From Epithemia pelagica (lineage: Eukaryota > Protista > Bacillariophyta), in NCBI GenBank assembly GCA_946965045.2, contig OX337242.1, positions 1,054,001 through 1,118,000 of the forward strand: a stretch of 64,000 nt of DNA, in the 5' to 3' direction. Positions 11,957 through 43,471 of the stretch are shown here, piece by piece; position 1 is the first letter of the stretch, and the number at the start of each line of letters is the position of its first letter. Position numbers and translations under genes: made by a program. The notes beneath the pieces are model-generated. The model did not search any database and was not told where the DNA came from. It saw nothing but the letters and a program-made list of their open reading frames with translations.

Positions 11957-12154
11957 GGTAGGCGCTTAGTCTCACTTCAAAGCTGCCGCACTTCTACTTC
12001 ATTATTTCGTCGTCGATTTGTGTATCATCTTGCGACCACGGTTCCCGCGATCGTTTCTCGAGTATGGGTCTGCCGGGTGGTTGGTGGTTGGTGGTTGTCG
12101 TTCTGTTCGCGGTGTCTGTCGGTCGCACGTCGCACACCATCAACGACGGGACTA

Positions 12155-25365: not shown

Positions 25366-28180
25366 ATGACCTTTAAGGATTCTGTTCCTTTCTTCGACAA
25401 GGAGTCGCCGACGATCCCCCTTTCGTCTGCCGCCTCTGGAGGTTCGCCGCCCGTCGTTTCTCAGCCCGATGATTCGCAGGACCAGAAACCCTCCGCCTTT
25501 GCCTCAAAGTCTGATGGTGGATTGTTTGAGGATGTGGATTACAGTGCCCTCTCGGACTCTGAACCCCAGGAGATTCTCGTTGCCGCTTCCCAAGCCAAGA
25601 AGAAGAAGATCGACCAGATCAAGTCCAAGATCTCCGTCTCTGACGATACGCCTCCTCCGCCTCCTCCTTCCCCCACGGGTGGTACAGCCAAATCGAATGA
25701 TGACGTTCTCTCTTCTCTTGTTGGCGGTGGAGGAGACAAGAGTCCTTCGACAGCTACCGCTTCGAATCGCTCCTCTCCTTCTTCCATTCTGTCCAAGTCC
25801 GATATTAAAGTCGCTCGTCGTTTCAAACTTTACTTCGCTGACGACTTCCATCTGATTTCGGCCAAGACTCTCCCCAAGGCATTAGACAATGTTGCAACGA
25901 TTGCCCCGGTTGATTGGTGTGATTCCTTTGTGACTCCTTTTCACATCTCTCTTGCTCGCGACCTTTCCCTTTGGACACAGCTCCAAGCAAGTTTCATCCG
26001 CCTATCGACTCCTGAAGAACTTCATGTTTGGATCTCTGCTAAGATCAAGACCAATTCGTTGGCCTTTCTTGGATCCTCTCGTTCCGGCCGTCCCATGATT
26101 TTCCATAATCTTTGTTGTCCAGTGGATTGTGGTACTTTGGTGAACCCGTCGATCGAATTCTTCGCTCTTGATCGTCCCTCCTTTGATGCGCCTCCCATCC
26201 AGATTGACGTCGACGATATCTCATCTCTCCTCCAAGAAGAGACCCTGAAGCACGTCCCATCCTTCTCGGCGATCCTCGAAGAATGTGTTGGAAAACTTGA
26301 CTTGCCTCCAGGCAAAGATTCGACCCCATGCTTCTTTTTCGATGGGAGTCAGTTCAAGAAGATGAACCCAGTTCCCTCCTCTGAAGCCAAAGAATCAGAC
26401 CGATTCACTTACTCCAACCTTTGTCTCATTCCTCCTGCCTTTGCCGGAATGATGATCAAGTACATGAATCCAGCCCGAGTTGACTCTTCCTTTTCGTTTG
26501 AAGACATCGCTGCCAACTTGTATGAGTTGACCCTCAAGCACTGGTGGTCCCACTCGCCCGATATGCCGCTGGAGACGAAACTCAAAGGCATGCAGATTGA
26601 TTTTCCTTTTCTCTCTGCACTTGAACACATGTTTCGCTTTCTTTGGGTCATGACCACTCGCTCTCAAGTTGAACTCCCTCGCGTCGTCATTCCCAACATC
26701 CCAAAGGACACCGATTCTGCATTCATGACATTGTTGGATCATCGCCACCGAGTCTTTCCCGAACTTCTTTCGTCCCCCGACTCGTCACCCAATCCAAGCG
26801 AAACTACAACCACCCCTCCTCAAGAAACTTCTCCGCCCCAGGTTGATTGTTCCTTTCCATCTTCAAACGACCCACCTCGTCCCACCAATGGTGTTCGTAT
26901 GATTGACGATGAAGGCATCGAGCATTTTGTTTCCCCAGAGATGTTTCTAATTTCGAAATGCCTCCGTGAAGTTGGTTCCCAGAAGAAGATTTCGAACGAA
27001 GACGACATTACTTCACCCGAATCAAAAAGTATGTTCCGAGATATGCCACAGATAGCCCAAAAACAACTTCGCCTGGGAGTTATTGACAGATCTTTCACCT
27101 CTCTTCCCACCGATCTCCCAGATGTTGTGAAGAAAGTTTGGAAATCGAAAAACTCGGCAACCTTTTTCAAGTCTTTTGTCGCAGAAGTTTTCGACCCCAT
27201 GGACAACGTGTGCACGATTCTTCTCGGCCAATGCACGGTGATCCAACGCCTTGGTTTGCGCTGGCGATCTGAAGCCTCTCCCGGAGGCTTCAGCCCTTTC
27301 TCTTTTGATCCGCACGCGATTCCAGGGATTGACTCTTCACACACGTTAGACAAGAATATACGACAACAAATTCACGACGCCTCTCTCTGTCATCTCAACG
27401 AGATGAAACAGAGTAAAGATATGCAACAACTCTATTCGGACCACAACCTGTTCTTTCCACGTACCGAAGACGAGTTTGAGAAACAATTGCGTTCGTATTG
27501 GGCCTGCGCCAAAGGCCTTTGCGGTCCCACCTCCATGATCTGCAATCAAATCCTCAAGTTTTTGAACTTTTTCCATGGCAATCGTACGAAAATCATGGCC
27601 AAAATGTTGAGTTCCGCCAACGAATTCCTTTACGGTCAGATGCTTTTCGGTCTCGACGAAGCCATACAAGAATTTGTTGGATCTTTGAGCGAGTTCAGCC
27701 TCTTCTCTCTCTGACGTTGCCTTCGATGAATTAGAACAACGTGTCAATTGGCTGATCTTCAATGTCAAGTTGGGTGCTCCCTTAGGCGGCTTACCTGCGG
27801 CCTTACAAGCAAAATTTTATGCCCAACAACAAAAACAAGGCAATAAGAAACGATCTTCCAACCCTGATGACCCAAGCAGTTCCAACAAGAAGCAAAATCA
27901 GGAATCCTCACTCCCCAAGAGTGCTGCGACTTTCGCTTCCCCCTCCAATTGGCGCTTACCCAAGAACAAGTCCTATCCGAAGATCTTCCCTCCTCATATC
28001 TTGGAGAACATGCCATCAATCGAGAAAGACGGCAAGACTGTTCCTTTTTGCAACATTCTCTTCTCAAAAGGATTTTGCAAGAAGGGTACAAAATGCAGCT
28101 TTTGTCACGACGATCCAGCGAAACACAACAAGAAGACCGAGATGGACAACTTCTATCGCACAGCGTACGAGAGTTCTTGA
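25366..28180 (+). CDS. Ngaro-like ORF1 (Gag-like) with C-terminal CCCH zinc finger; one frameshift at the (CT)n tract ~27700-27712
   Basis: ORF 25366-27714 overlaps a second frame that is open from 27689 to 28180. The latter contains C-x8-C-x5-C-x3-H (CNILFSKGFCKKGTKCSFCH). Confidence 0.75.
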
Positions 28181-31100
28181 CGCCATGAAGGGTTGATTGT
28201 CACTTCCTCCATATCTCCCCTTCCTGGACCACCGAACGTCGACAGTCAACCCGTTGACTTCTCCCATCGTCTCCCCATAGTTCACTCATCCGCTCCGATA
28301 ATAGTTCCATCGTTTCTTCCACCTCTCGCTTCCCCGTCATCCCATGACATCCCATCCATTCCCTCAACAGCAAATCCCTTCCTTCCCCATCAACCATCTC
28401 AAAACCACACACGGCATCCAGATGCTTGTGCTGCTGCAATCCATAGACAAATTCTCCCCAAGACAAATCTTTTGACGACGACTCCACATGTGCGTTTTCC
28501 AACGGACTGTGGATCTCTCAACAAGATTCGACTTTTTGATGCAAGTCAGCCGGCTTCGCTTTCTCCAGTTATCCCCAAGACTTTATCCCCTTCCGATTCG
28601 CTCTCGTTGATCCCAGCCCCTTCGGATTCGGCTCTCCGCCCTTCAAGTTTCCTTACCCTTGACACGACCCCCAAGACCACCGACCATTTTCCCCCAAATC
28701 TATCCTCACAAATCCAGAATTCTCTTCCAGGAAGCGAATCTGCGATTGAAGGATCTGACTTCTCGGGACGCCCTCTCCACCGGAATGTGAAACGACTACA
28801 AGATGCTCGAAACGCGGATGTTCAACTATTAGGTGAGTTTAGACTATTGCCCCGTCCTTTCCCCAAGTATGATGATCCCAAGCCCTACCTCCCGAACGAT
28901 GTACCCAAGATCTTCCCGAACCGACTCTTCCCTCCGGCACTCCGTCAAGAAAGCCATCCCCTATCGTTGGATGTCATCATTGCCATCTCCCAGACTGAGC
29001 AAGATACACCACACGATTCCCCGTTTCGCCACGACATTCATCCAGATGAAGTCGCTGTCGCTAACGCTGAATTCAACTCACGGTTGATTGATGAATATGA
29101 TATGGACATGCAGCGTCTCCTTGACGCCTATCCATACTCGGTCATCTCCCCAGGATCCGAATTCCGGCCAGCCGGAGTCTTGGAGCCCTTACTGGCAGGC
29201 CATCCCTATTGGCCTCGCCTCAAGTCCATTATCTCTCACGGCGTCTCCTACCCCCTCACAGCTGTGGAAGATGAGACCGCACGGCGAGCTGAGAACGACG
29301 CAATCCTGGAGTATGGAAACCATGCCTCAGGAAAGAAGAATCCTGAGGCACTGACCAAAGTCTTGCTTAAGGATGCCTCTCGTGGTTACTCCCTCCCAAT
29401 CACATTTAGCTGTGCAAAATCGATTAAACATAGTCGTATCAGCCCGATGGGAGTGGCTCACCAGTTGGGAATCGACGCTCACGGCGACCTGATTCCCAAA
29501 GACCGCTTGACCCATGACCAATCCTTCTCTCTCGGTTTCTGTCCCTCCACAAACGACCTCATCGATCAGGAACAGCTAATTGACCTCGTGATGGGCCATT
29601 GCATTGACCGCATCATTCATCAAATTGTTGTATTACGCTGGCACCACCCCACCGAGAAGATTTTGTTGAGTAAATTCGATTGGGCATCGGCCTATCGTCG
29701 CATCCATGGCGACGGCGAAGTGGCCGCCAGGAATATCACCATCGACCCGTCAAACTTGTTTGCCCATCTGAACCTTCGACTGACTTTCGGAGCCTCCGCC
29801 AACCCCGCCGAGTTTTCCGTCGTTTCCGAAATCGGGACAGATCTTTGCAATGATCTTGCCGATCTCCAAGAATGGACGCCTGATTGTTGTGTCTCCCCAC
29901 TTCAGTCAGACATTGGCCCGCCCCAATTCCTATCCGAAGACATTCCCATTGCACAAGCACAAGAACTAGCCGTCATGGTTCCTCCTCGTCCCCACGGATT
30001 TCATGACTGTTATTTAGATGACATGATCCAATTGTTCCTGGCCACTGAAGAGAACATTCATCGCTGCCCATGCATCGTTCCGTTGATTGTCCATCTTATG
30101 ACTCGACCTCTCGCCGACGACGAACCCATCACCCGCAAAGCAATGCTGGAAGACGACAAACTGAAGGCAGAGGGCGCCCCAGTCGAAGAACAACGTGTTC
30201 TCGGCTGGACCATTGACACCAGACGACTCCTTCTTCGCCTCCCGTATGAGAAGAAGGTCGGCTGGACCAAACAAGTCCAAGAATTGTTGGATAAACGAAA
30301 AACAACTTTCGCCCATCTTCGAAGCCTCAATGGAAAATTGTTACATGCAATCAAGGGCATCCCCCTTGCCTCCCACTGGCTCGGTCGCCTCCGCGAATAC
30401 CAGACCTTCATCGAACGGACATATCGACAGAAACAGGCAGCCAAAACAGCCGATCAACAACAACAAGATTCCGACAATCCCAAACGATCGAACCGTGACA
30501 CGTCGCCACCGTTTTACCGGTACAACGTCCCCGAATCGTTGATTGCTGATTTGAAAATGTGGAGAACACTTCTCTCACATTCACACGAAGGAATCTCGCT
30601 GAACCGTCTCGTGTGTCGAGTCCCCACCCACCTCTATCACGCCGACTCCTGTCCAGAGGGAATGGGTGGATATTCGGTATCCACTGGCCGAGCCTGGCGG
30701 ATGCAGATCCACCAGTCTGCCATCGACACTCTCCGCACACACTCGATCGACGAAGAAAAACGATCGAATAACCTTCTTGAGTATATTGCGATTGTGGTCT
30801 CCATCTGGGTGGATTGCTACTTTCATGACATCCCTGAAGATGCAGCCGTTCTCGCCTTATCCGACAACTCTTCAGCCGTGGGATGGCTCCACAAGACATC
30901 GTTTGGAACCGACAAGCCACTCCACATCCAAGTGTCAGCACAACTGACCCACTTGGTCATGCTCCACAAGTTTGCTCTCCAGGCGGAACACATACCAGGG
31001 AAAAGGAACGAGGTGTCAGACATCTTATCTCGAGCTTGGGAAAAATCTGACAGAGAACTCACCTTTTTCATTCACGAAAATTATGCTTCACAGATTCCTC

Positions 31101-31561
31101 AGAATTTTCGCATCAAACAACTCCCGAGCGAAATCTTATGTTGGATTTGCTCCATCGTGCCTCCGTTTCCCGGATCTTCTTCGGCAAAACCGAAGGATCC
31201 CACCAAAAGCGCGACCGAACTTGGGACCGATGGCTTACGCACTTGCGGGGTATTGGATTCAGTCACGACCCCTTCCTCGAATCCCTCCACGCCGCCAACC
31301 ACAGAGCCAGTGTCGCATGCTCCTTCCTCCAACGCCTCCGGGAAGCCGAGTTCACACGCAACCGCGACAGCTCGAACCCTCTTCGAGCGAGCACTCTCCA
31401 ACAAGCCATTGGAGACTTGGCATCGAGCTTCCGGCATCACGACCGGCCGAGCCCTTGCCACAGTCAAGACGGCAGTCACCTCCACCCCATCGTCGCCTCC
31501 CTCAAGCGCGCGTGGGAGAATCTTGACCCCCCGGAAAAGAGAGAGAAGGCCATCACAATAA
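28181..31561 (+). CDS. Ngaro-like ORF2: reverse transcriptase + RNase H
   Basis: SKFDWASAYRRI, LTFGASANPAEF, CYLDD (~30011), VLGWTIDT. RNase H motifs ADSCPEGMGG, NLLEY, SDNSSAVGW, HIPGKRNEVSDILSR. In frame with the ORF1 3' part across a TGA. Confidence 0.92.
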   Translation, partial: RHEGLIVTSSISPLPGPPNVDSQPVDFSHRLPIVHSSAPIIVPSFLPPLASPSSHDIPSIPSTANPFLPHQPSQNHTRHPDACAAAIHRQILPKTNLLTTTPHVRFPTDCGSLNKIRLFDASQPASLSPVIPKTLSPSDSLSLIPAPSDSALRPSSFLTLDTTPKTTDHFPPNLSSQIQNSLPGSESAIEGSDFSGRPLHRNVKRLQDARNADVQLLGEFRLLPRPFPKYDDPKPYLPNDVPKIFPNRLFPPALRQESHPLSLDVIIAISQTEQDTPHDSPFRHDIHPDEVAVANAEFNSRLIDEYDMDMQRLLDAYPYSVISPGSEFRPAGVLEPLLAGHPYWPRLKSIISHGVSYPLTAVEDETARRAENDAILEYGNHASGKKNPEALTKVLLKDASRGYSLPITFSCAKSIKHSRISPMGVAHQLGIDAHGDLIPKDRLTHDQSFSLGFCPSTNDLIDQEQLIDLVMGHCIDRIIHQIVVLRWHHPTEKILLSKFDWASAYRRIHGDGEVAARNITIDPSNLFAHLNLRLTFGASANPAEFSVVSEIGTDLCNDLADLQEWTPDCCVSPLQSDIGPPQFLSEDIPIAQAQELAVMVPPRPHGFHDCYLDDMIQLFLATEENIHRCPCIVPLIVHLMTRPLADDEPITRKAMLEDDKLKAEGAPVEEQRVLGWTIDTRRLLLRLPYEKKVGWTKQVQELLDKRKTTFAHLRSLNGKLLHAIKGIPLASHWLGRLREYQTFIERTYRQKQAAKTADQQQQDSDNPKRSNRDTSPPFYRYNVPESLIADLKMWRTLLSHSHEGISLNRLVCRVPTHLYHADSCPEGMGGYSVSTGRAWRMQIHQSAIDTLRTHSIDEEKRSNNLLEYIAIVVSIWVDCYFHDIPEDAAVLALSDNSSAVGWLHKTSFGTDKPLHIQVSAQLTHLVMLHKFALQAEHIPGKRNEVSDILSRAWEKSDRELTFFIHENYASQIPQNFRIKQLPSEILCWICSIVPPFPGSSSAKPKDPTKSATELGTDGLRTCGVLDSVTTPSSNPSTPPTTEPVSHAPSSNASGKPSSHATATARTLFERALSNKPLETWHRASGITTGRALATVKTAVTSTPSSPPSSARGRILTPRKRERRPSQ

Positions 31562-32496
31562 AACATTTGCGATTCATGTGGGTCCGTTGTTGTGTCCGTA
31601 AAACAAAAGGCCATCCAACCAAGTTCATCTTCGAATTCACCACCTTCGACGCATACATTGTTGATTTGGCCGGCTGCGCATTCTTCTTTGCCATGCGCAG
31701 CTGCGAATACTTGACCGTTCCATCAAGAGGCAAAACAAAACTCCTCACAATCGGCAACATTGTCTTCACCACCAAAGACAAACATGTCACCATCCGAGCC
31801 GACCACCCAAGATTCAACGAACTGGCTGCTTACGTCTCCGTCACTTTTATCGATCAGAAAAACAACAAGAAAGCCGAAACACGCACACAGAGCAGAACCA
31901 GCGACCCCGTCTTCGATCCTGTTCTCATGTGGGGACGTGTGATTCGGCGCATTCTGCACTTTCGCCCCAATGCCCCACCAGACACGCCGGTGAATTGTTG
32001 GTTCGATCCAACCAAACCATCAAAACCACCACGATTCATTCGACAAGAAGACTTGCGCAATTTACTTCGCGAAACCTGCGCTCTCGGTGGAGGCTACACA
32101 AAATTCGGCTACCACCCAATGGACATTGGGACTCATTCAATCAGATCCGGCGCGGCCATGTCTCTCTTTCTCGCTGATTGTTCCGTCGCCAAGATTATGA
32201 TCTTGGGACGATGGAGCTCCTCAGCGTTCATGCGATACATCCGTCCACAAGTTCTTGAATGGACGTCTGGAATGGCTCAGCTGATGCTGACCACCCAAGA
32301 CTTTCGCCACCTCGACAGTTCCACCGTCGCCTCCCGCACCGAATCCCTGGAACGACTTCGCAATCGATTAGACAACCTCATCGATCCCGCCTTCCAGACA
32401 AATACCGAAACGGCGATGGAATCGCCGGAAGAAAACCTTTTCAATGGCCCAGGACCCCTCATTCACTTCCCCAACACACTCCACCTCGACTTGTAA
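31138..32496 (+). CDS. Ngaro-like ORF3: tyrosine recombinase (overlaps the ORF2 3' end)
   Basis: FFFAMRSCEY (R), DQKN (K), THSIRSGAA (HxxR), LGRWSSSAFMRYIR (W, Y). Confidence 0.94.
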   Translation: MLDLLHRASVSRIFFGKTEGSHQKRDRTWDRWLTHLRGIGFSHDPFLESLHAANHRASVACSFLQRLREAEFTRNRDSSNPLRASTLQQAIGDLASSFRHHDRPSPCHSQDGSHLHPIVASLKRAWENLDPPEKREKAITIKHLRFMWVRCCVRKTKGHPTKFIFEFTTFDAYIVDLAGCAFFFAMRSCEYLTVPSRGKTKLLTIGNIVFTTKDKHVTIRADHPRFNELAAYVSVTFIDQKNNKKAETRTQSRTSDPVFDPVLMWGRVIRRILHFRPNAPPDTPVNCWFDPTKPSKPPRFIRQEDLRNLLRETCALGGGYTKFGYHPMDIGTHSIRSGAAMSLFLADCSVAKIMILGRWSSSAFMRYIRPQVLEWTSGMAQLMLTTQDFRHLDSSTVASRTESLERLRNRLDNLIDPAFQTNTETAMESPEENLFNGPGPLIHFPNTLHLDL

Positions 32497-35802: not shown

Positions 35803-36214
35803 CTATACCATTACAGCTCTCCAGAGCGCGCGACCTATCCATTCCGTCGCACAGCCAAAAACTAACAGATATGCAAAGGTAATGGCATGCCAGCCACAAA
35901 ATGCGACAAACCAGAGGGGCCATGCTCGGTCCACATCTGCATCAATTATCGTACCTTTGATCACCGTTCCTCTGGGAAGGGACGGTGTGTTGTTGTCCAC
36001 AAGTGGACCTAGACGAAACACCTTCAGGGCAGCAGGAGCTTCACGAAAAAGCGTGAGAAAGGCCAACATAGAGGATAGAGGAAGTGTCGGCGCGGCTGTG
36101 GGACAAAAGATGCGTTCTCGGATCAGTGTAACCGCTAGTACAATGTGAGGAGCCACAATGGTGGCAGCGCACCCCCACAACGCCTTAGAAGATCCCAGCA
36201 CTTTGGGAACAATA
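35803..36214 (-). pseudogene. menA: 3' part of the MenA-like prenyltransferase gene, separated by the 36215-42331 transposon
   Basis: PKVLG..APHIVLA..WPLWFVAFCGWH C-terminal UbiA/MenA-like segment. It rejoins the 5' part in frame when the element and one TA are removed. Confidence 0.75.
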
Positions 36215-36725
36215 CCAGCTAACGGTGTAAACGGTCGTAGCCGGCCTTGCCGAGACACGCCTTCATTTACTATGACACAAATAGTGAGAAGCCCTTTTGT
36301 TAAATGAAAAACTACCAACAGCCAAAATTTTGGAGATTTAGGGTAGCCCCTAGCTTGGACCCGTTTCAACGGATCTATTGGACCCCTGAGAGCGAGACCA
36401 ACGGTCGGAAATGATCCAATGGTCATCCAAGCAACATTCCCCGCCGTTGGTCTCGCTCTCAGACATCCAATAGGTTCCCAAATTTGGCTCCTAAAAGAAC
36501 AGCCCCTTTTTTCGTCGGATGGTACCCACCAAAAAATGAGCGGCCTATGGAACTTCAGCCGACGCACCAACACTAGCATTAATACCAGTACAGTAAATCT
36601 ATGTTAATCGCACATTAGTCTCATCCAATTTTCCAAAAACCAACCATCTCGTCCAACTGCGTTTGACTTGATTTCGATACCATTATAAGGATTACATCCC
36701 TATCCCCGAGAGACAACAACCAACG

Positions 36726-39700
36726 ATGTCTGCATGCTCTTCTCACCAAGCAAACGAAACAGGAACCATGGATCCCTGCGCCTGTTGCCCCCTAAGCAAC
36801 GACCTATTTCTACCCTCATCATTGCGAGAGAATTGCAGCACCTCTGCCAACAAAGAAAATACTGGTGATCCAATCAGTTCCACCTCAACGAAAGTCACAA
36901 AGAACAAGAAGAAACCAGCTAAAACTCCCTTACAACCACAACGTCGTTCGCGGAGACAGCCCTCTCGTGGCTCGAGAAAGAGAGGAGGCGGTCCTCCACC
37001 TCCTGCCTCTGCGGCATCTCCAAACAAACGAACAAGAAGCCAACGCCAAGAAGATAATGCACCCGTTGAAGACACTGTTTTCGAGCTCCGCCGCATCCAC
37101 AAGATCATCGAAGACTTCAAGAATGAAGACTGGGTCCCCTGCTCTGTTTTCGGATCTAACCGTTTGAAAGAATGGGAGGATGAAGATTTTTTCTTCTGTG
37201 GTCAATGTGACAACGCTGACTGGGATGAAAAGTCTGGCGAAAAGCTCAAGGTAAATCGGAAGAGGAAAAAGGGTCCCTACACATGTATTGCCAAGCACCG
37301 TAATTTAGTTAAACCAACGGCCCGTAGATATCCTGATGGTCCACCCCCAAGAATCAACAAGAAGAAACGACGACAAGATCGTCGGCAGAGGCGAAATGAC
37401 CCCCAGCCCATACCTACAAGTCGATTTCAACCTCCTGTTATGGGACCTAGTGCTACTCTCTCCGACATTGAAGAAGAGGATGATGAAGATGACGTTGAAA
37501 ACAACCGTACAATCTCGTCTGTAGAGCAAACAGAACCTCAACCATTGGTCGATGATGGAACAGGCCCACCTGTACAAGAAGAAGCTTCTACTCCCATAGA
37601 AAGTCAAGGAAATCAGTTAAATGATTCGGAATCAAGCGAGTCTGAAGCACCTGTTGAACAAGACAATACTGTTACGATGGCCGTTGATTCTTCTGTAGAT
37701 ATGCCAGTGCCCATACAACCATTGAACCCGTCAATCAACCTTTCTGAGTTATCACTACAAGAAGAAGTGAGACTGTTGAAAGAACGTCTTAGAAAATCGG
37801 AAGAACAAGTAGAGACTCAAACAAAGAAGCTTCGCAACGAATCAGACAAGCTGCGAGACGCTAAGAAGAAGATAGAAGAGCTCGAACGAAATTGTGCCAC
37901 ATGCAAAAGTCGTCGCCTACCCACCTGTGTCACATCGAATGACCAGGCAGACACACTCGTACAACATATCAGGAGTGTCATTGAAGATGCAACCAAGAAC
38001 ATCCGGAGTAGTAATAGTCGTGCTTTGAAGTATTTCTACGGCCAAGTCGCAGAGTTGTGTCTCGACGAGAGCGTCCACGAAGGGCAACTCAAGCAATGTT
38101 CTTACTCAGTCTTTCGAGACTATGTAAGGCAGAATATCTATACCCCCCACCGTGTACTGAAACAAATGGATCTTCGGGGGGGTATACTGAACTACGAAGG
38201 CATCGAACTACTGCGTTCCGTAGAGACAGATGGTGTTCCTAGAGAGAAGACGCTCCTACCTAGTTCTGGTTGTATGAAAGCCTACGCTGCTTTGGTAGAG
38301 AGCTTTGGACGCAACATCTGTCCCTTCATCATGAAGACAAGCTCGAAAAATGGCTCCGAAGGTTTTGCTTTTCGTGCAGCCGATGTACTCCTTTGTCTTC
38401 TGAAGGCTGGTCATCTTCTAAACTCCGAGGCCGTGGTGAGGTCGATACGAATCGCTGCCAGTCTTGATGGCGCACAATTTACTAAGAATTTGTCACACAC
38501 CTTGGTTGGTATCAAATTCAACGATCCATCCAACCCATATGCGCAGTCACAACAATCAGTCTTTCCCGTTGGATGTGTGGCAATGCCAGAAACGACTGAG
38601 AACGTGGTTGGAGTTTTTGCAAGAACCTTGGAAGAAATCAAGGAAGCCGTTGGAGTTGTATCCAAGGCACATAAGATCAAGAAACCCACACTCTGCTTCA
38701 ATTGCGATATGAAATGTGATTGGGAACTCAGTGGACGAGGGGGTGCCGCCAAGCAGCATACTTATCCCTGTTCTAAATGCGCCATTCACAGTGGACAGCT
38801 GTGTCAACCATCGGGGATAAAACCAGACAAGTGCAAAACCTGTACTCAATTGGATCATCATCATGACCCATCTTGGATTTGCCGCCATGTAAAGATGCTC
38901 ACTGAGGAGCATACTGCAACCTTGAAGAAAGAGGTCGACGACTTCCGTAATGGTCCCCTGCCTCTAATCGCTAAAGACCTTGCTTTGCTTGAGGAGCATA
39001 GCGAACTGTCGATGCAAGATGATCCCAATATTGTTGCAACGGAGATGCAAGCCAACGATATCCTTTCGATCCAATTTGACTTGAACCGGGCGACACAGGA
39101 GCAGAGGCAAGAGTATTCTCGACTGGTCACGTCAGATTTGAGGTTGCGTCGACTCCAAATGACAGGATCGTTGGAGGAACGACAGGAGCGTTTAAAGAAT
39201 CAGAGAGTCAAGGAATGGTCCTACAAAAGAGCATTGGAATGTCTGGACAATGCCAAGGCCTCCCAGAAGCGTATTGCCATCGTGCTTATGATGGACGCCA
39301 TTCCATGCTTGCTCCATCTCGAGAATCGAATGGGGATCAAGTTTCTGACCATGGTGCTAAAGACGGGGATGAACAACGCGATAAATCCAAAGGACGGCGT
39401 TGAATTGGAGTGGATGCCTCCTACAACAACAACAAAGGAAGACCGATGTGCTGCATTCGTCAGCAAGGTCAATGACATTATGAATTCAACAATTCTGGGA
39501 TCAGAGGACCAACCAACCCAATGGACAGTGCCATACGACACCAAAACTTGCAAGATTGGAGACATTACAATGGATAACGTGAGGATTCGAAAGCTCCTCA
39601 TCAAATTCGAGTTGTTGATTGATTGTTGCTTTGTGGATAACGAGAAGGCCGCCCTCTTTAAGTCTGCAATCTACTATTTCAGGGAGGGTCTGAAGAAAGT

Positions 39701-40410
39701 GAACGTGCGACATGAAATGTCGGACAGTGAGATCTTTGCTTTTCAGAAAGATATCGACTACTTCTACAGAGATTGGTGCTCATTGTATGGAGTCGAGGGG
39801 ATAACAAACTACGCCCATATGCTGGGTAGTGGCCATTGCATGGAATATCTATTGCATTGGCGTAACTTATGGTTGCATAGTCAACAAGGCTGGGAAGGTA
39901 AGTTCAATCCACAACGGTGTATTTGACTGAGGGCTCCATCAACTGACGGCTGACCACCAATGTGTTATAGCCTTTAACAGTTTGTTTAAAAGGTTCTACT
40001 TCTCTCGGACACAGAGAGGAGGCGCGGGGAATCGGGGAACGGCGGAGAAGAGTAGGTTGCGGTCAATGGCCCGATGGTTGCAGCGCCGAATGGTGTTCCT
40101 CATTGGAACCACTGAGGAAGAGATAAAACAACAACTGGATCGGTCGCAAGAAGAGATAGAAAACTTCGATGAATGGATTCGTGAGAATGGGGGGACACTG
40201 GAGTATGGCTTGTCAAACAAGGACGGACCAATTCGACTGGAGGATTTGGAGGGGGCAGTGGTCGATGACTGGGAAGTTGGTCTCCCTCCGAAACAGAAAT
40301 CGCCGCAACAATCTTCCGGACAAGTTCCGGAAGAAGCAAATCTCAGAACTGTGGACCTGTTGCGTATATTGGATCAGAATGATGATCTGGAGAATCTAAA
40401 TAATGAGTAA
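36726..40410 (+). CDS. RAG1/Transib-like DDE transposase, 2 exons (36726-39897, 39971-40410), ~1203 aa
   Basis: SLDG (D at 38466), CDMK (D at 38706), YPCSKC, IPCLLH, TNYAHMLGSGH. After the intron (GTAAGT..TAG) the sequence reads SQQGWEAFNSLFKRF (E at 39894). Motif order and spacing match the RAG1 core. Confidence 0.8.
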
Positions 40411-40461
40411 TGAGAAGCACTTTATGGAACGACACTAGATTCTTATATATCTTATTGCAAA

Positions 40462-42003
40462 CTAGTTGAACTGACGAATTAGGAGAAGGACCTCGTCAGC
40501 ATCTTCCCATTTATGAATCTCTTGTTGATCCATGGGGAGGTCGTGGTCGTAGAACACTCCGCCGATAATACGAGACACAACAAACGGGCCATTCTCGTTA
40601 CGGTTGACTGCTATGACCTCATACACGTTTTGCTCGTCCCAGTCAGTGAACTGGTGGCCGATCTTGATACGGCTACTGGGGGAGTCTTGGGCAGTCGACT
40701 TGGCAATTTTGTTAGGTGAAGCAGGGCTTGGTGCTTTAGAGGGCTCGGAATCACTCTCGGTGGTGTCGGAAGGTTCATGTTGGTAGACATCGGTCGTGTC
40801 AGTCTTATCGTCAGATGATGTTGGTGTTCCTTGGAGAATGTTCTTGAGGTCCTCAGTGGGAGGGTCATTCTTGAGCTTTCCCTTGTGGTCAAGGGAGTAC
40901 TGATACTGCTCGTATCCCACTACAACGCGACAATGAAAGTCGGACCAACAAAGGTCAACTCGCTGGTCGCGAGATCTGACTTTGAAATTTTCTTTTTCCT
41001 CGGATGTAGATCCCTTCACAAGTGTCACACGGTGCTCGGGCTTGAGGGAAGTTCCATTGGGACCGTCGGCAAGAGTGGGTTTGCGATCGGTACACCCATA
41101 AGTACTGCCGAATCCAAGCAAGCCTCGTAAGAACTGGAGGTCGTCAGAACTCCGAAACCGAATAATGGTGGTGGGGTAGCTCATCTTTACTTTCTTCCTG
41201 GTGAACTTGGGGTCGATATCGAGATAGGACGCAGAACCCTTGGTTGTATGGATGTCTATGCCTTGGATTCGACAAAGCTGGACAATATAGGTCCAGGTTT
41301 CTGTAGGTACAAGGCCAATGGTATCGCCAGTCACTTCGTGTTCCTCGGCCTGGCCAGAAGATTTGTTCAACAATTTCACGAGAGCCTTGCGAAGAAGGAA
41401 TAGGCCAACAAAAGATGACTGGTGAAAGCATCTTGGGGGACGAACTGCCTTATCCACAATGAAACGACAAGCGTGCTCGTTCGGAAAGCAAAGCTTTGTC
41501 TTCTCCTCTAATGGATGTAGACAACCAACCGGAGGATCACTGTCAATGATGGGCATCCGGAAACGAACAAAGAAGAAATTGTTAAGGCCTTCAGTCCAAC
41601 TGTTCTTGGGAGACTTGAATTCATGTAGGGAAAATACAAAAGCCGGGTGGGAAATAACGGAGGAGGCATCTTCTACGACGTCAAATGTAGTGGACGATTC
41701 GTACAGTTCCGTGTTTCGTGAACCAAGGCCCAGCATCACCCTGGTGTAATTGTGCTTGGGCAGTTTGGGGTGAGACTGGTCATTTAGATTGTAGCGGGGA
41801 AACAAAGGAGGGAACAACACAAACCTGAGGCCGGTGGCATTGATTCGAGAGTGGATGCGTGCGATCGTCGTATCGTCTTTCTGTCCGGGAAGATGGATGT
41901 GGACAAACGACCCGATGCGGAGGTGATCGTCGAGTCTCTTTACGTAGAAAGGCGGCTTGTTGATGTCCGGTACACTCCGAAACATGGTGGATTTAGGATA
42001 CAA
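40462..42003 (-). CDS. Transposon accessory protein of unknown function (possible BAH-like beta domain)
   Basis: Uninterrupted 513-codon ORF inside the TIRs, tail-to-tail with the transposase (51 bp between stops). The BAH resemblance is only a pattern impression. Confidence 0.7.
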   Translation of the reverse strand: MYPKSTMFRSVPDINKPPFYVKRLDDHLRIGSFVHIHLPGQKDDTTIARIHSRINATGLRFVLFPPLFPRYNLNDQSHPKLPKHNYTRVMLGLGSRNTELYESSTTFDVVEDASSVISHPAFVFSLHEFKSPKNSWTEGLNNFFFVRFRMPIIDSDPPVGCLHPLEEKTKLCFPNEHACRFIVDKAVRPPRCFHQSSFVGLFLLRKALVKLLNKSSGQAEEHEVTGDTIGLVPTETWTYIVQLCRIQGIDIHTTKGSASYLDIDPKFTRKKVKMSYPTTIIRFRSSDDLQFLRGLLGFGSTYGCTDRKPTLADGPNGTSLKPEHRVTLVKGSTSEEKENFKVRSRDQRVDLCWSDFHCRVVVGYEQYQYSLDHKGKLKNDPPTEDLKNILQGTPTSSDDKTDTTDVYQHEPSDTTESDSEPSKAPSPASPNKIAKSTAQDSPSSRIKIGHQFTDWDEQNVYEVIAVNRNENGPFVVSRIIGGVFYDHDLPMDQQEIHKWEDADEVLLLIRQFN

Positions 42004-42331
42004 AGAACGTCTTTTGTAGTTGACAATCTGAACCTAAGGAGTTGTGCTTGATTGTTGTGTCAAACAACCATCTTGATCGTCTGCATTTGGGTCGTTTGTC
42101 ATTAGTTCTCCATTGGATGTTGGCTTCCGAGTGAGCTTTTGGCAAGAATTGATGAGGTGAATGTGGATGGTGTTGCGACAGAAAAGACATTTATTTCTTA
42201 ACAAAATGAAAGTCGGATTCGGATCCTATATTTTATGTTTAAGGTCGCCAGTCGGCATTTTGGTGAGGGCAGGCGCGTAACTTGGCCCTGGAGGCACGTG
42301 TACACGGGAAACCGTTAACACCGTTAGCTGG

Positions 42332-43471
42332 TATTGAGCGTTCGTTTTCTAGATCGAGTGATCTTGTCCGCTGGAAAGAGATGAAGTAGTTTCGTGTAAG
42401 AAAAGATATCCAGCTCAAAGGAACATTGACAAAAGCATCTCAACGAACATACTGTGTTTGCCCATGATCAAACTGAACCCCGCAAGTCCAAAGATGATAA
42501 CGGCGGGGTCATAAAACAAGGTTGCCGGCCCAGCCCATAGTGCTCCAGCGGCAAGTCGCCTTTTTCAATGATAAAAGAGACAGAACAAGGTTTGGAAAAC
42601 GAAAATGAGTCCTCGGAACATTGTAGAAAAAGTATCCTAATAGACACTGCACGTACCCGAATCCAGCCATGAGTGGACCCCACACAAAGTAGATAAGAAT
42701 TTCGCCCAAAGATAGTGGCTTGAACACAATGGTATAAAAGAACAGGGCAATGATACCATAAACAGCGGCTGGGGCCAACACCGTTTTGCGAAATACATAT
42801 GTCAACAATGCACCAGGCAGACCGACAAGAGCCATTATTCCAAGAAAGCTCGACTTTTTCAGAAAGCCTTGTTTGAGAGCGTGACATCCATAGGCTAAGC
42901 GAAAACTGTCTTCCACACTATCATCGTCGTCCAAATCTTGCCAATCGTTGAGCAAGTTGTGGGTGGCATGCCAAGAAAGACCATCAATTGTAAAAAGAGC
43001 AGCCACGAATGGTGTCAATGGCATGGTAGACCAAGCCGAAGCGGGCAAGGCTGACCGTAGAGCGCCTCGAACAATCAAGGGGCCGAAGCAGGATAAGAGT
43101 GTGAGATGAAGCACAGAAACTCGTGACACAATGGCCAGTCGTTTCGCCAATGGAATGGAATCAAATTGTTCTTGCGTTTCGACAGCAATAGGGACTTCAC
43201 ATATCTCACGCCAGGGAGGATTCAGTGTGGGGGAGGGATTGTTGTTGCTCCTCATTTCACCTTCCTCGTCCTCTGCCGATGATGCTGACCGCAATGGATG
43301 GAAGGATCGGCCATAATTCTCCACATGGCAATGGCGTCGGCGTGTCAGAGTCAAATCAATGTGGAAAGGCGCGAACGCACAAGATCCAGTAGCGCCAAAC
43401 CACGCGTAAGAAAGCGAAATCCAGAACCAGTGCGATATCATGACCACCCGGTTCCGCCTGGCAACAACCAT
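42332..43471 (-). pseudogene. menA: 5' part of the plastid-targeted MenA-like (UbiA family) prenyltransferase, interrupted allele
   Basis: Signal peptide + CAFAP motif, HATHNLLNDWQD, LSLGEILIYFVWGPL. Introns ~42560-42656 and ~42371-42452 give GKHTDKI..RTL. Confidence 0.78.

Follow-up and report, generated by a model that had tools for sequence, protein, structure and literature searches.

Is the RAG1-like gene in the genome of a diatom part of an intact and mobile transposon, and if so, how close to RAG1 does this transposon stand? The origin of RAG1 from Transib-type transposases is the textbook case of domestication, and the family tree of the RAG1 enzymes has so far been limited to lineages within reach of sequence searches. 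The locus that raises the question lies in a stretch of 64,000 nucleotides from Epithemia pelagica (GenBank assembly GCA_946965045.2, contig OX337242.1, positions 1,054,001 to 1,118,000 of the forward strand), which we call the window and to which all coordinates refer unless another locus is named. An original prediction made from the letters of the window had proposed a RAG1/Transib-like transposase in an intact two-gene transposon at 36726-40410. We find that the element, which spans 36210-42336, is best described as a real, intact and recently mobile transposon with an enzyme of the RAG1/Transib fold, and as a new lineage of the CACTA-Mirage-Chapaev-Transib (CMCT) group rather than a member of Transib/RAG.

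The transposase gene

The open reading frame (ORF) at 36726-39926 on the plus strand, of 1066 aa, is present in the window. All five motifs that had been read from it are found at their predicted places on this strand, namely SLDGAQ (residues 579-584, nt 38460-38477), CDMKCDWELSG (residues 660-670, nt 38703-38735), YPCSKC (residues 680-685, nt 38763-38780), IPCLLH (residues 859-864, nt 39300-39317) and ITNYAHMLGSGH (residues 1026-1037, nt 39801-39836).

The original prediction also held that the glutamate motif appears only after splicing, and this agrees with what we find. Without the 73 nt at 39898-39970 (+), which start with GTAAGT and end with TTATAG, the frame is 3,612 nt long, has its only stop at the terminus and encodes 1,203 aa, and the junction then reads ...SQQGWEAFNSLFKRF. 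The predicted splice joins ...SQQGWE to AFNSLFKRF. Exon 1 (36726-39897, +) would encode residues 1-1057 and supply the first base of codon 1058, and exon 2 (39971-40410, +, including the stop) carries the conserved C-terminal block FxRTxxGG...ARWLQRR. Paralogs that read through agree with the position of the junction: QQGWEAFNS is uninterrupted in eight paralogs of the same genome (P0007, P0008, P0013 and P0019-P0023) and in 15 metagenomic relatives (P0026-P0040), and at the sequence level these intronless genes confirm the predicted junction. The paralogs that retain the intron all continue with G[KE] right after QQGWE, so the intron position is shared.

We found 40 homologs of the transposase. 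Seven of the singled-out motif residues, D581, C682, C685, H864, H1031, H1037 and E1057, are invariant in 34 relatives with identities down to 21%, and D661 is conserved in at least 90% of the sequences. This conservation is far beyond chance. The proposed catalytic residues are D581 (38466-38468, +) and D661 (38706-38708, +) as first and second aspartate, and E1057 (39894-39896, +), the last full codon of exon 1, as the glutamate. The C(2)C motif, C682-x2-C685, lies at 38769-38780 (+) and the histidine pair, H1031-x5-H1037, at 39816-39836 (+). By their invariance and their spacing relative to D and E, the two Cys and two His are candidates for a RAG1-type zinc site (ZnC2/ZnH2). Directly after the C(2)C pair we observe an extra C-x2-C-x12-C-x-H cluster (C703, C706, C719 and H721; 38832-38888, +), which is invariant in 33-34 sequences and may form a second zinc site. 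To our knowledge, this cluster has no counterpart in RAG1.

A Cys/His cluster and a coiled coil had been predicted for the long N-terminal part, and both are found. The conserved cluster at 37137-37298 (+) contains C140, C158, C161, C187 and H191, with C158, C161 and C187 nearly invariant, and is a possible zinc finger. The coiled coil lies at 37743-37901 (+; about residues 340-392), where coiled-coil proteins give the sole Pfam and PDB sequence matches of the transposase.

Fold of the transposase

For the structural comparison the core of P0007, one of the intronless paralogs, was modelled with AlphaFold2 on a 33-sequence alignment (pLDDT 87.8, pTM 0.79). This core is 48% identical to that of the window protein, and the motif residues are all conserved between the two. 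In a Foldseek search of the PDB the 49 best matches of the model are all RAG1, BbRAGL of amphioxus or HzTransib, with a best E-value of 4.9e-10, and the 50th match is Hermes at E 0.049. The VIA Z-scores of the model are 21.5 for HzTransib (6pqx), 21.3 for RAG1 (model 4-641 on RAG1 461-1005) and 19.9 for BbRAGL, as against 11.6 for the P element, 9.2 for ISCth4 and 7.6 for Hermes. The alignments with HzTransib and RAG1 comprise 413-463 residues and take in the whole core, which in the case of RAG1 means everything between the dimerisation/DNA-binding domain and the C-terminal domain, both included. The ranking was identical in a search of 48,161 chains carried out independently of Foldseek.

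The proposed catalytic residues are also found where the fold would have them. In model numbering D117 is part of strand 111-120, D198 comes just after strand 192-197, and near the start of helix 587-603 is E590. The equivalent of D581 is in strand 1 of a beta1-beta2-beta3-helix-beta4 unit and that of D661 directly after strand 4. In the model the placement of D, D and E is the canonical DDE arrangement of RNase H-like transposases, and the C-terminal 600 residues or so are predicted to have the whole RAG1/Transib core architecture. The RAG1/Transib fold of the original prediction is therefore borne out by the structural matches, the best of which do not belong to another DDE superfamily.

At the level of sequence no such likeness is detected. 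No transposase family of Pfam was matched by the protein, by 34 full-length members of the family or by the 33 cores, and the RAG1 models were not matched even at E 10. Among the PDB sequences no match to RAG1 or HzTransib was obtained at E 10 with phmmer, with the profile of the whole family or with the motif-rich sub-profiles A4 and A5. The hidden Markov models (HMMs) of Transposase_21 (PF02992), Plavaka and DUF1258 did not match the family either.

Element boundaries and mobility

The element has a length of 6,127 bp (36210-42336, +). Its boundaries follow from a second copy, found in a public assembly of this organism (L001:6433-12575), that matches exactly this span with 98.3% identity between unrelated flanks, and from contigs of three public sequencing runs of the same organism (X1-X3), in all of which the joint 36208>42337 omits the element. 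Loose contig ends in these runs recovered the flanks of the L001 copy and at least one further right flank. In run X2 the depth of the flanks is about that of the filled form and the empty form together, which fits a heterozygous insertion. The presence of a copy with 98.3% identity elsewhere shows that the element has moved recently.

Both ends carry a terminal inverted repeat of 26 nt, at 36210-36235 (+), beginning CAATACCAGC, and at 42311-42336 (-). The two repeats are 96% complementary, and the 26-nt sequence is matched twice in the window, where 0.00 matches are expected. The hexamer AACGGT is found at 36221, 36230, 36400, 42311 and 42320, that is twice in each inverted end with a distance of 9 nt and once in a palindrome described below, on a background of 0.5 per kb in the window. 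We regard the hexamer as a candidate transposase-binding motif. The window element, nine paralogous elements and seven metagenome elements all have CA at the start and TG at the end. The ends of the window element start CAATAC and those of the paralogs CAATAG or CAATAC, with one paralog starting CACAACG. We looked for a heptamer of the CACWRTG type and a nonamer in the element ends and found neither. The ends are symmetric, and no 12/23-like asymmetry was seen.

Without the element the site reads GGGAA-GCGTT, and with it GGGAA-element-AGCGTT, so a single base was duplicated on insertion, the two copies being the A at 36209 on the left and the A at 42337 on the right. Another way of reading the termini, in which CAAT..ATTG would be a duplicated CAATTG target, is ruled out for the window copy since the empty site does not contain those letters. 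We took eleven further paralogous loci from a long-read assembly, of which one is cut by a contig end and one is without clear ends. All nine paralogous elements with CA..TG inverted ends have an identical base on both sides, which makes ten of ten with the window copy and has a chance probability of about 1e-6.

A comparison of the window element with the second copy shows how the two genes have been maintained. Between the transposase genes there are 33 synonymous and 15 non-synonymous changes along with two 3-nt indels that keep the frame, and between the partner genes 9 synonymous and 8 non-synonymous changes. Coding sequence has 1.1-1.5% differences per site and non-coding sequence 3.0%. 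Both genes of the element are under purifying selection. With its inverted ends, nearly identical copy, empty site and selected genes, the element is the intact and recently mobile two-gene transposon that had been proposed, and it appears to be active now in the diatom. An autonomous and recently active cut-and-paste DNA transposon, with the transposase gene and the placement given here, is the best explanation of the locus, and we hold it with good confidence.

The partner gene

The second gene of the element is an ORF on the minus strand at 40462-42003. It has 513 aa when counted from a TTG, but the homologs start at what is here the first ATG, residue 7 (41985). The transposase and partner genes are convergent with 51 bp between their stops. 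We found 15 homologs of the partner, mostly on contigs that match in length those with transposase homologs. The identities of the two proteins go together: that of the partner is about 55% where that of the transposase is 54-62%, and about 35-40% where that of the transposase is 44-47%. On L002, a 5.7-kb metagenome contig with a transposase of only 36% identity, the convergent partner is kept (30% identity, E 3e-30). Among 80 metagenome loci a partner homolog is present in 39, always downstream and on the opposite strand, and many of the remaining loci are too short to tell. The convergent downstream partner is also found in L001-L009 and L090-L092.

Residues 15-166 of the partner (41506-41961, -) are predicted to form a BAH domain. 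In a Foldseek search with the partner model (pLDDT 67.3) the top 27 matches are to BAH domains or to proteins that contain one, with a best E-value of 1.9e-5 and a probability of 1.00. VIA gives a Z-score of 12.6 and an rmsd of 2.6 over 120 residues for the whole domain of SHL/EBS, all 50 of the matches listed are BAH domains or BAH-containing proteins, and the AlphaFold DB agrees. Pfam gave no family for the partner at E-values up to 1, the BAH HMM included. A RAG2-like partner with a Kelch propeller was considered and is ruled out, as BAH is the sole fold match and a propeller is absent among the matches. BAH domains elsewhere read H3K27me3, H3K9me3, H4K20me2 or the nucleosome surface. By analogy, we infer that the partner may link transposition to the state of the chromatin.

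The remaining part of the partner, residues 195-513 (40465-41419), is conserved and gave no fold match. The neighbours that a language model gives for it are pieces of transposases of the CACTA, RAG1 and Plavaka kinds, and as their scores of 0.85-0.89 are below the reliable range, they can serve as leads only.

Placement within the CMCT group

A C(2)C motif and a histidine pair, H(3-4)H, occur alike in EnSpm/CACTA, Mirage, Chapaev, Transib, Plavaka, ESTA, Lanisha and RAG1 (Kojima, PMC12730594). As these motifs are common to the whole CMCT group, the motif parallels mark the wider group and not RAG1/Transib alone. In the present family C682-x2-C685 is invariant, and the spacing of 5 in the pair H1031-x5-H1037 is one more than the 3-4 of the group. 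ESTA was linked to RAG1 through HHpred only. The best reading of the family is an undescribed CMCT lineage, whose ends, 1-bp scar and BAH partner match no described RAG, Transib or CACTA element. Within this explanation we lean slightly to the Transib/RAG1 side, because RAG1 is nearest in language-model features: the clusters of vertebrate RAG1 come first at 0.96 with 187 of 256 features shared, followed by cnidarian and DUF1280 clusters at 0.94-0.95, whereas for the CACTA Transposase_21 clusters the score is 0.88, with 128 shared features, and for Plavaka 0.85. As a placement, the deep-branching RAG1 relative of the original prediction is one among several, since predicted CACTA structures match about equally, and only the language-model features favour it. 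A more specific proposal, in which the family is a RAG1-fold lineage at the level of a superfamily, sister to Transib/RAG, with near-blunt integration (1-bp stagger), an independently recruited BAH reader and continuing activity, is one that we put forward tentatively, its chances being a little under even.

A first alternative would place the family on the CACTA/EnSpm-Mirage-Chapaev side, the likeness to RAG1 being owed to the lack of a solved CACTA-type structure; we know of none. It can draw on the ESM Atlas, in which PF02992 clusters align with the model over up to 499 residues at TM 0.56-0.60, and a Transib cluster over 422 at 0.53. The ends also speak for it. The family has CA..TG ends, and some of our metagenomic relatives start with CACTAC, as En/Spm does. 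The C(2)C motif and the histidine pair are found throughout the group (PMC12730594). However, the likeness to predicted CACTA transposases is at the level of the fold only, the Transposase_21, Plavaka and DUF1258 HMMs and every other Pfam model of the group being unmatched, and the language-model likeness to CACTA is clearly below that to RAG1. The described CMCT lineages, which usually have CA..TG ends, have duplications of 2-5 bp (PMC12730594), and the single base found here is outside this range. A BAH partner is absent from the lineages described in the literature searched. We therefore consider a placement on the CACTA side unlikely.

The family could also belong, as a divergent but true member, to the Transib superfamily or to RAG1L/RAG2L. 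It shares the whole-core fold and the CA..TG termini with Transib (HzTransib; Kapitonov and Jurka 2005, PMC1131882), and cut-and-paste transposition as we infer it here. With RAG1/RAG2 and the RAG-like elements it has in common the RAG1 core fold, motif-by-motif parallels and two convergent genes as in ProtoRAG, and the strong matches among solved structures and the nearest language-model clusters are those of this side only. The PHD finger of RAG2 and the BAH domain of the partner are both of the chromatin-reader type, which is an analogy and not homology. The features that define Transib and RAG-like elements are nevertheless missing. Transib has a 5-bp duplication and H(4)H, whereas here the duplication is 1 bp and the pair is H(5)H. 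The transposase also has a CCCH cluster and, at its N-terminus, a long extension that holds the Cys cluster and coiled coil, and the element has an obligatory second gene. Its symmetric ends start CAATAC and are without the CACWRTG-type heptamer and the nonamer, its partner is a BAH protein without a Kelch propeller or PHD finger and not a RAG2 homolog, and neither the Pfam RAG1 models nor the PDB sequences of RAG1 and Transib are matched by the family profiles at E 10. Because the tests of profile, heptamer-like ends, 5-bp duplication and RAG2 fail, we do not file the family as Transib/RAG-like, and the membership that had been proposed for it is quite improbable.

That the locus holds two domesticated host genes and no mobile element, as the purifying selection on both genes and their conserved pairing might suggest, is hardly credible in view of the perfect boundaries with inverted ends, the second copy with other flanks, the existence of an allele of the same organism that lacks the element, and the more than 20 paralogous elements that have diverged within a single genome.

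There are several points that weigh against an undescribed, RAG1-leaning CMCT transposon as we have described it. The structural model is that of a paralog and not of the spliced protein of the window. No profile ties the family to known transposases, and the case for homology is made from predicted structure, short motifs and a language model. The equivalence to D600, D708 and E962 of RAG1 and to its zinc ligands is putative. The TM values in the ESM Atlas, higher for CACTA than for Transib, would allow several placements inside the CMCT group. The partner model is mediocre, and two thirds of the protein are without an assigned fold. Chromatin targeting by the partner and hairpin chemistry are argued from analogy to other systems, and splicing of the transposase transcript is predicted from sequence comparison. 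Finally, an identical flank base is found in only two of seven short-read metagenome contigs. We attribute this to chimeric and unreliable flanks in short-read repeat contigs, although the caveat remains.

Proposed mechanism

We suggest that the transposase would bind the ends of the element, perhaps through the AACGGT repeats and the N-terminal Cys cluster. It would then nick the DNA and excise the element, probably via hairpins on the flanking DNA as in the RAG, Transib and hAT enzymes, and the 3' ends would be joined to target strands one base apart. The most likely role of the BAH partner is to direct transposition on chromatin or to license it there, and the partner could be an analogue of the RAG2 PHD finger with a separate origin.

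Family size, distribution and previous reports

The family is widespread in aquatic eukaryote metagenomes. A first homolog search returned more than 20 relatives from ENA sources with identities of 39-99%. A search of 1.84 billion proteins with the core profile yields 4,345 representative clusters with E<=1e-3, of which 707 reach E<=1e-30, and in metagenome contigs the profile finds 432 loci. Many metagenome contigs of the family (L010-L089) have a length of 4.9-5.8 kb, which is about one element each. Motif-guided scans of viral contigs and of bacterial and archaeal genomes did not find relatives. The eleven paralog loci all come from one assembly, ERZ21939226, which means that many diverged element lineages coexist in this genome.

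The original prediction described Transib-like transposases as known mainly from animals, which is outdated. Transib has been reported in bacteria, fungi and plants, and a RAG1L-RAG2L transposon (AanRAGL) in the stramenopile Aureococcus (PMC9435367; accepted in PMC10629977). With a RAG-like transposon already published from Aureococcus, a RAG1 relative in a stramenopile is not new in itself. Our literature search, Repbase aside, found no paper that links Transib or RAG1 to diatoms, no paper on this transposon family or on a 1-bp duplication, and no description of a BAH gene in a DNA transposon.

Implications

The results describe a large family, invisible to HMMs, that combines the full RAG1 core architecture with a partner of a chromatin-reader fold and a 1-bp scar. 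If the placement near Transib/RAG is true, the family would provide an outgroup for deciding which features of RAG1 are ancestral, a natural experiment on the dependence upon a chromatin-reading partner, and a test of active-site spacing as a determinant of the target stagger. If it is a sister lineage with an independently acquired BAH protein, the partnership of a RAG1-type cutter with a histone reader would have been invented a second time. There is also a practical side. The elements are unannotated in diatom genomes and metagenomes, where their products are listed merely as 'hypothetical protein'. The host diatom is probably culturable, and the elements may serve as a genetic tool for diatoms.

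Sub-terminal palindromes and further observations

A palindrome with 39-nt arms and a 21-nt loop is found at 36375-36473, 5' of the transposase start. At an equal distance from the left end, but with another sequence, there is a palindrome in seven of nine other elements examined and also in L002. These left-end palindromes are located at L001:6610-6704, L003:5648-5724, L007:5630-5724, L008:5562-5670, L014:401-473, L015:226-306, L021:264-344 and L002:113-221. Their arms have 16-43 nt and their loops 21-47 nt. All are upstream of the transposase start, 150-200 bp inward from the left end. It is the position that is conserved between the elements and not the sequence. The palindrome may be a promoter, a regulatory element or a protein-binding site.

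Near the left end, at 36313-36317, the contigs of runs X1-X3 diverge into two other continuations. Related elements or deletion derivatives, with only about the first 105 bp of the left end in common, may be their source, or the divergence may be an effect of the nearby palindrome on the assembly. One of the paralogous elements, at L092:5423-11825, is enclosed by a second and perfect inverted repeat of 31 nt (L092:5026-5056 and 12124-12154), and this element may be nested within another one. Outside the transposon, the window has a strongly negative GC skew of -0.19 to -0.25 at 26000-32000.

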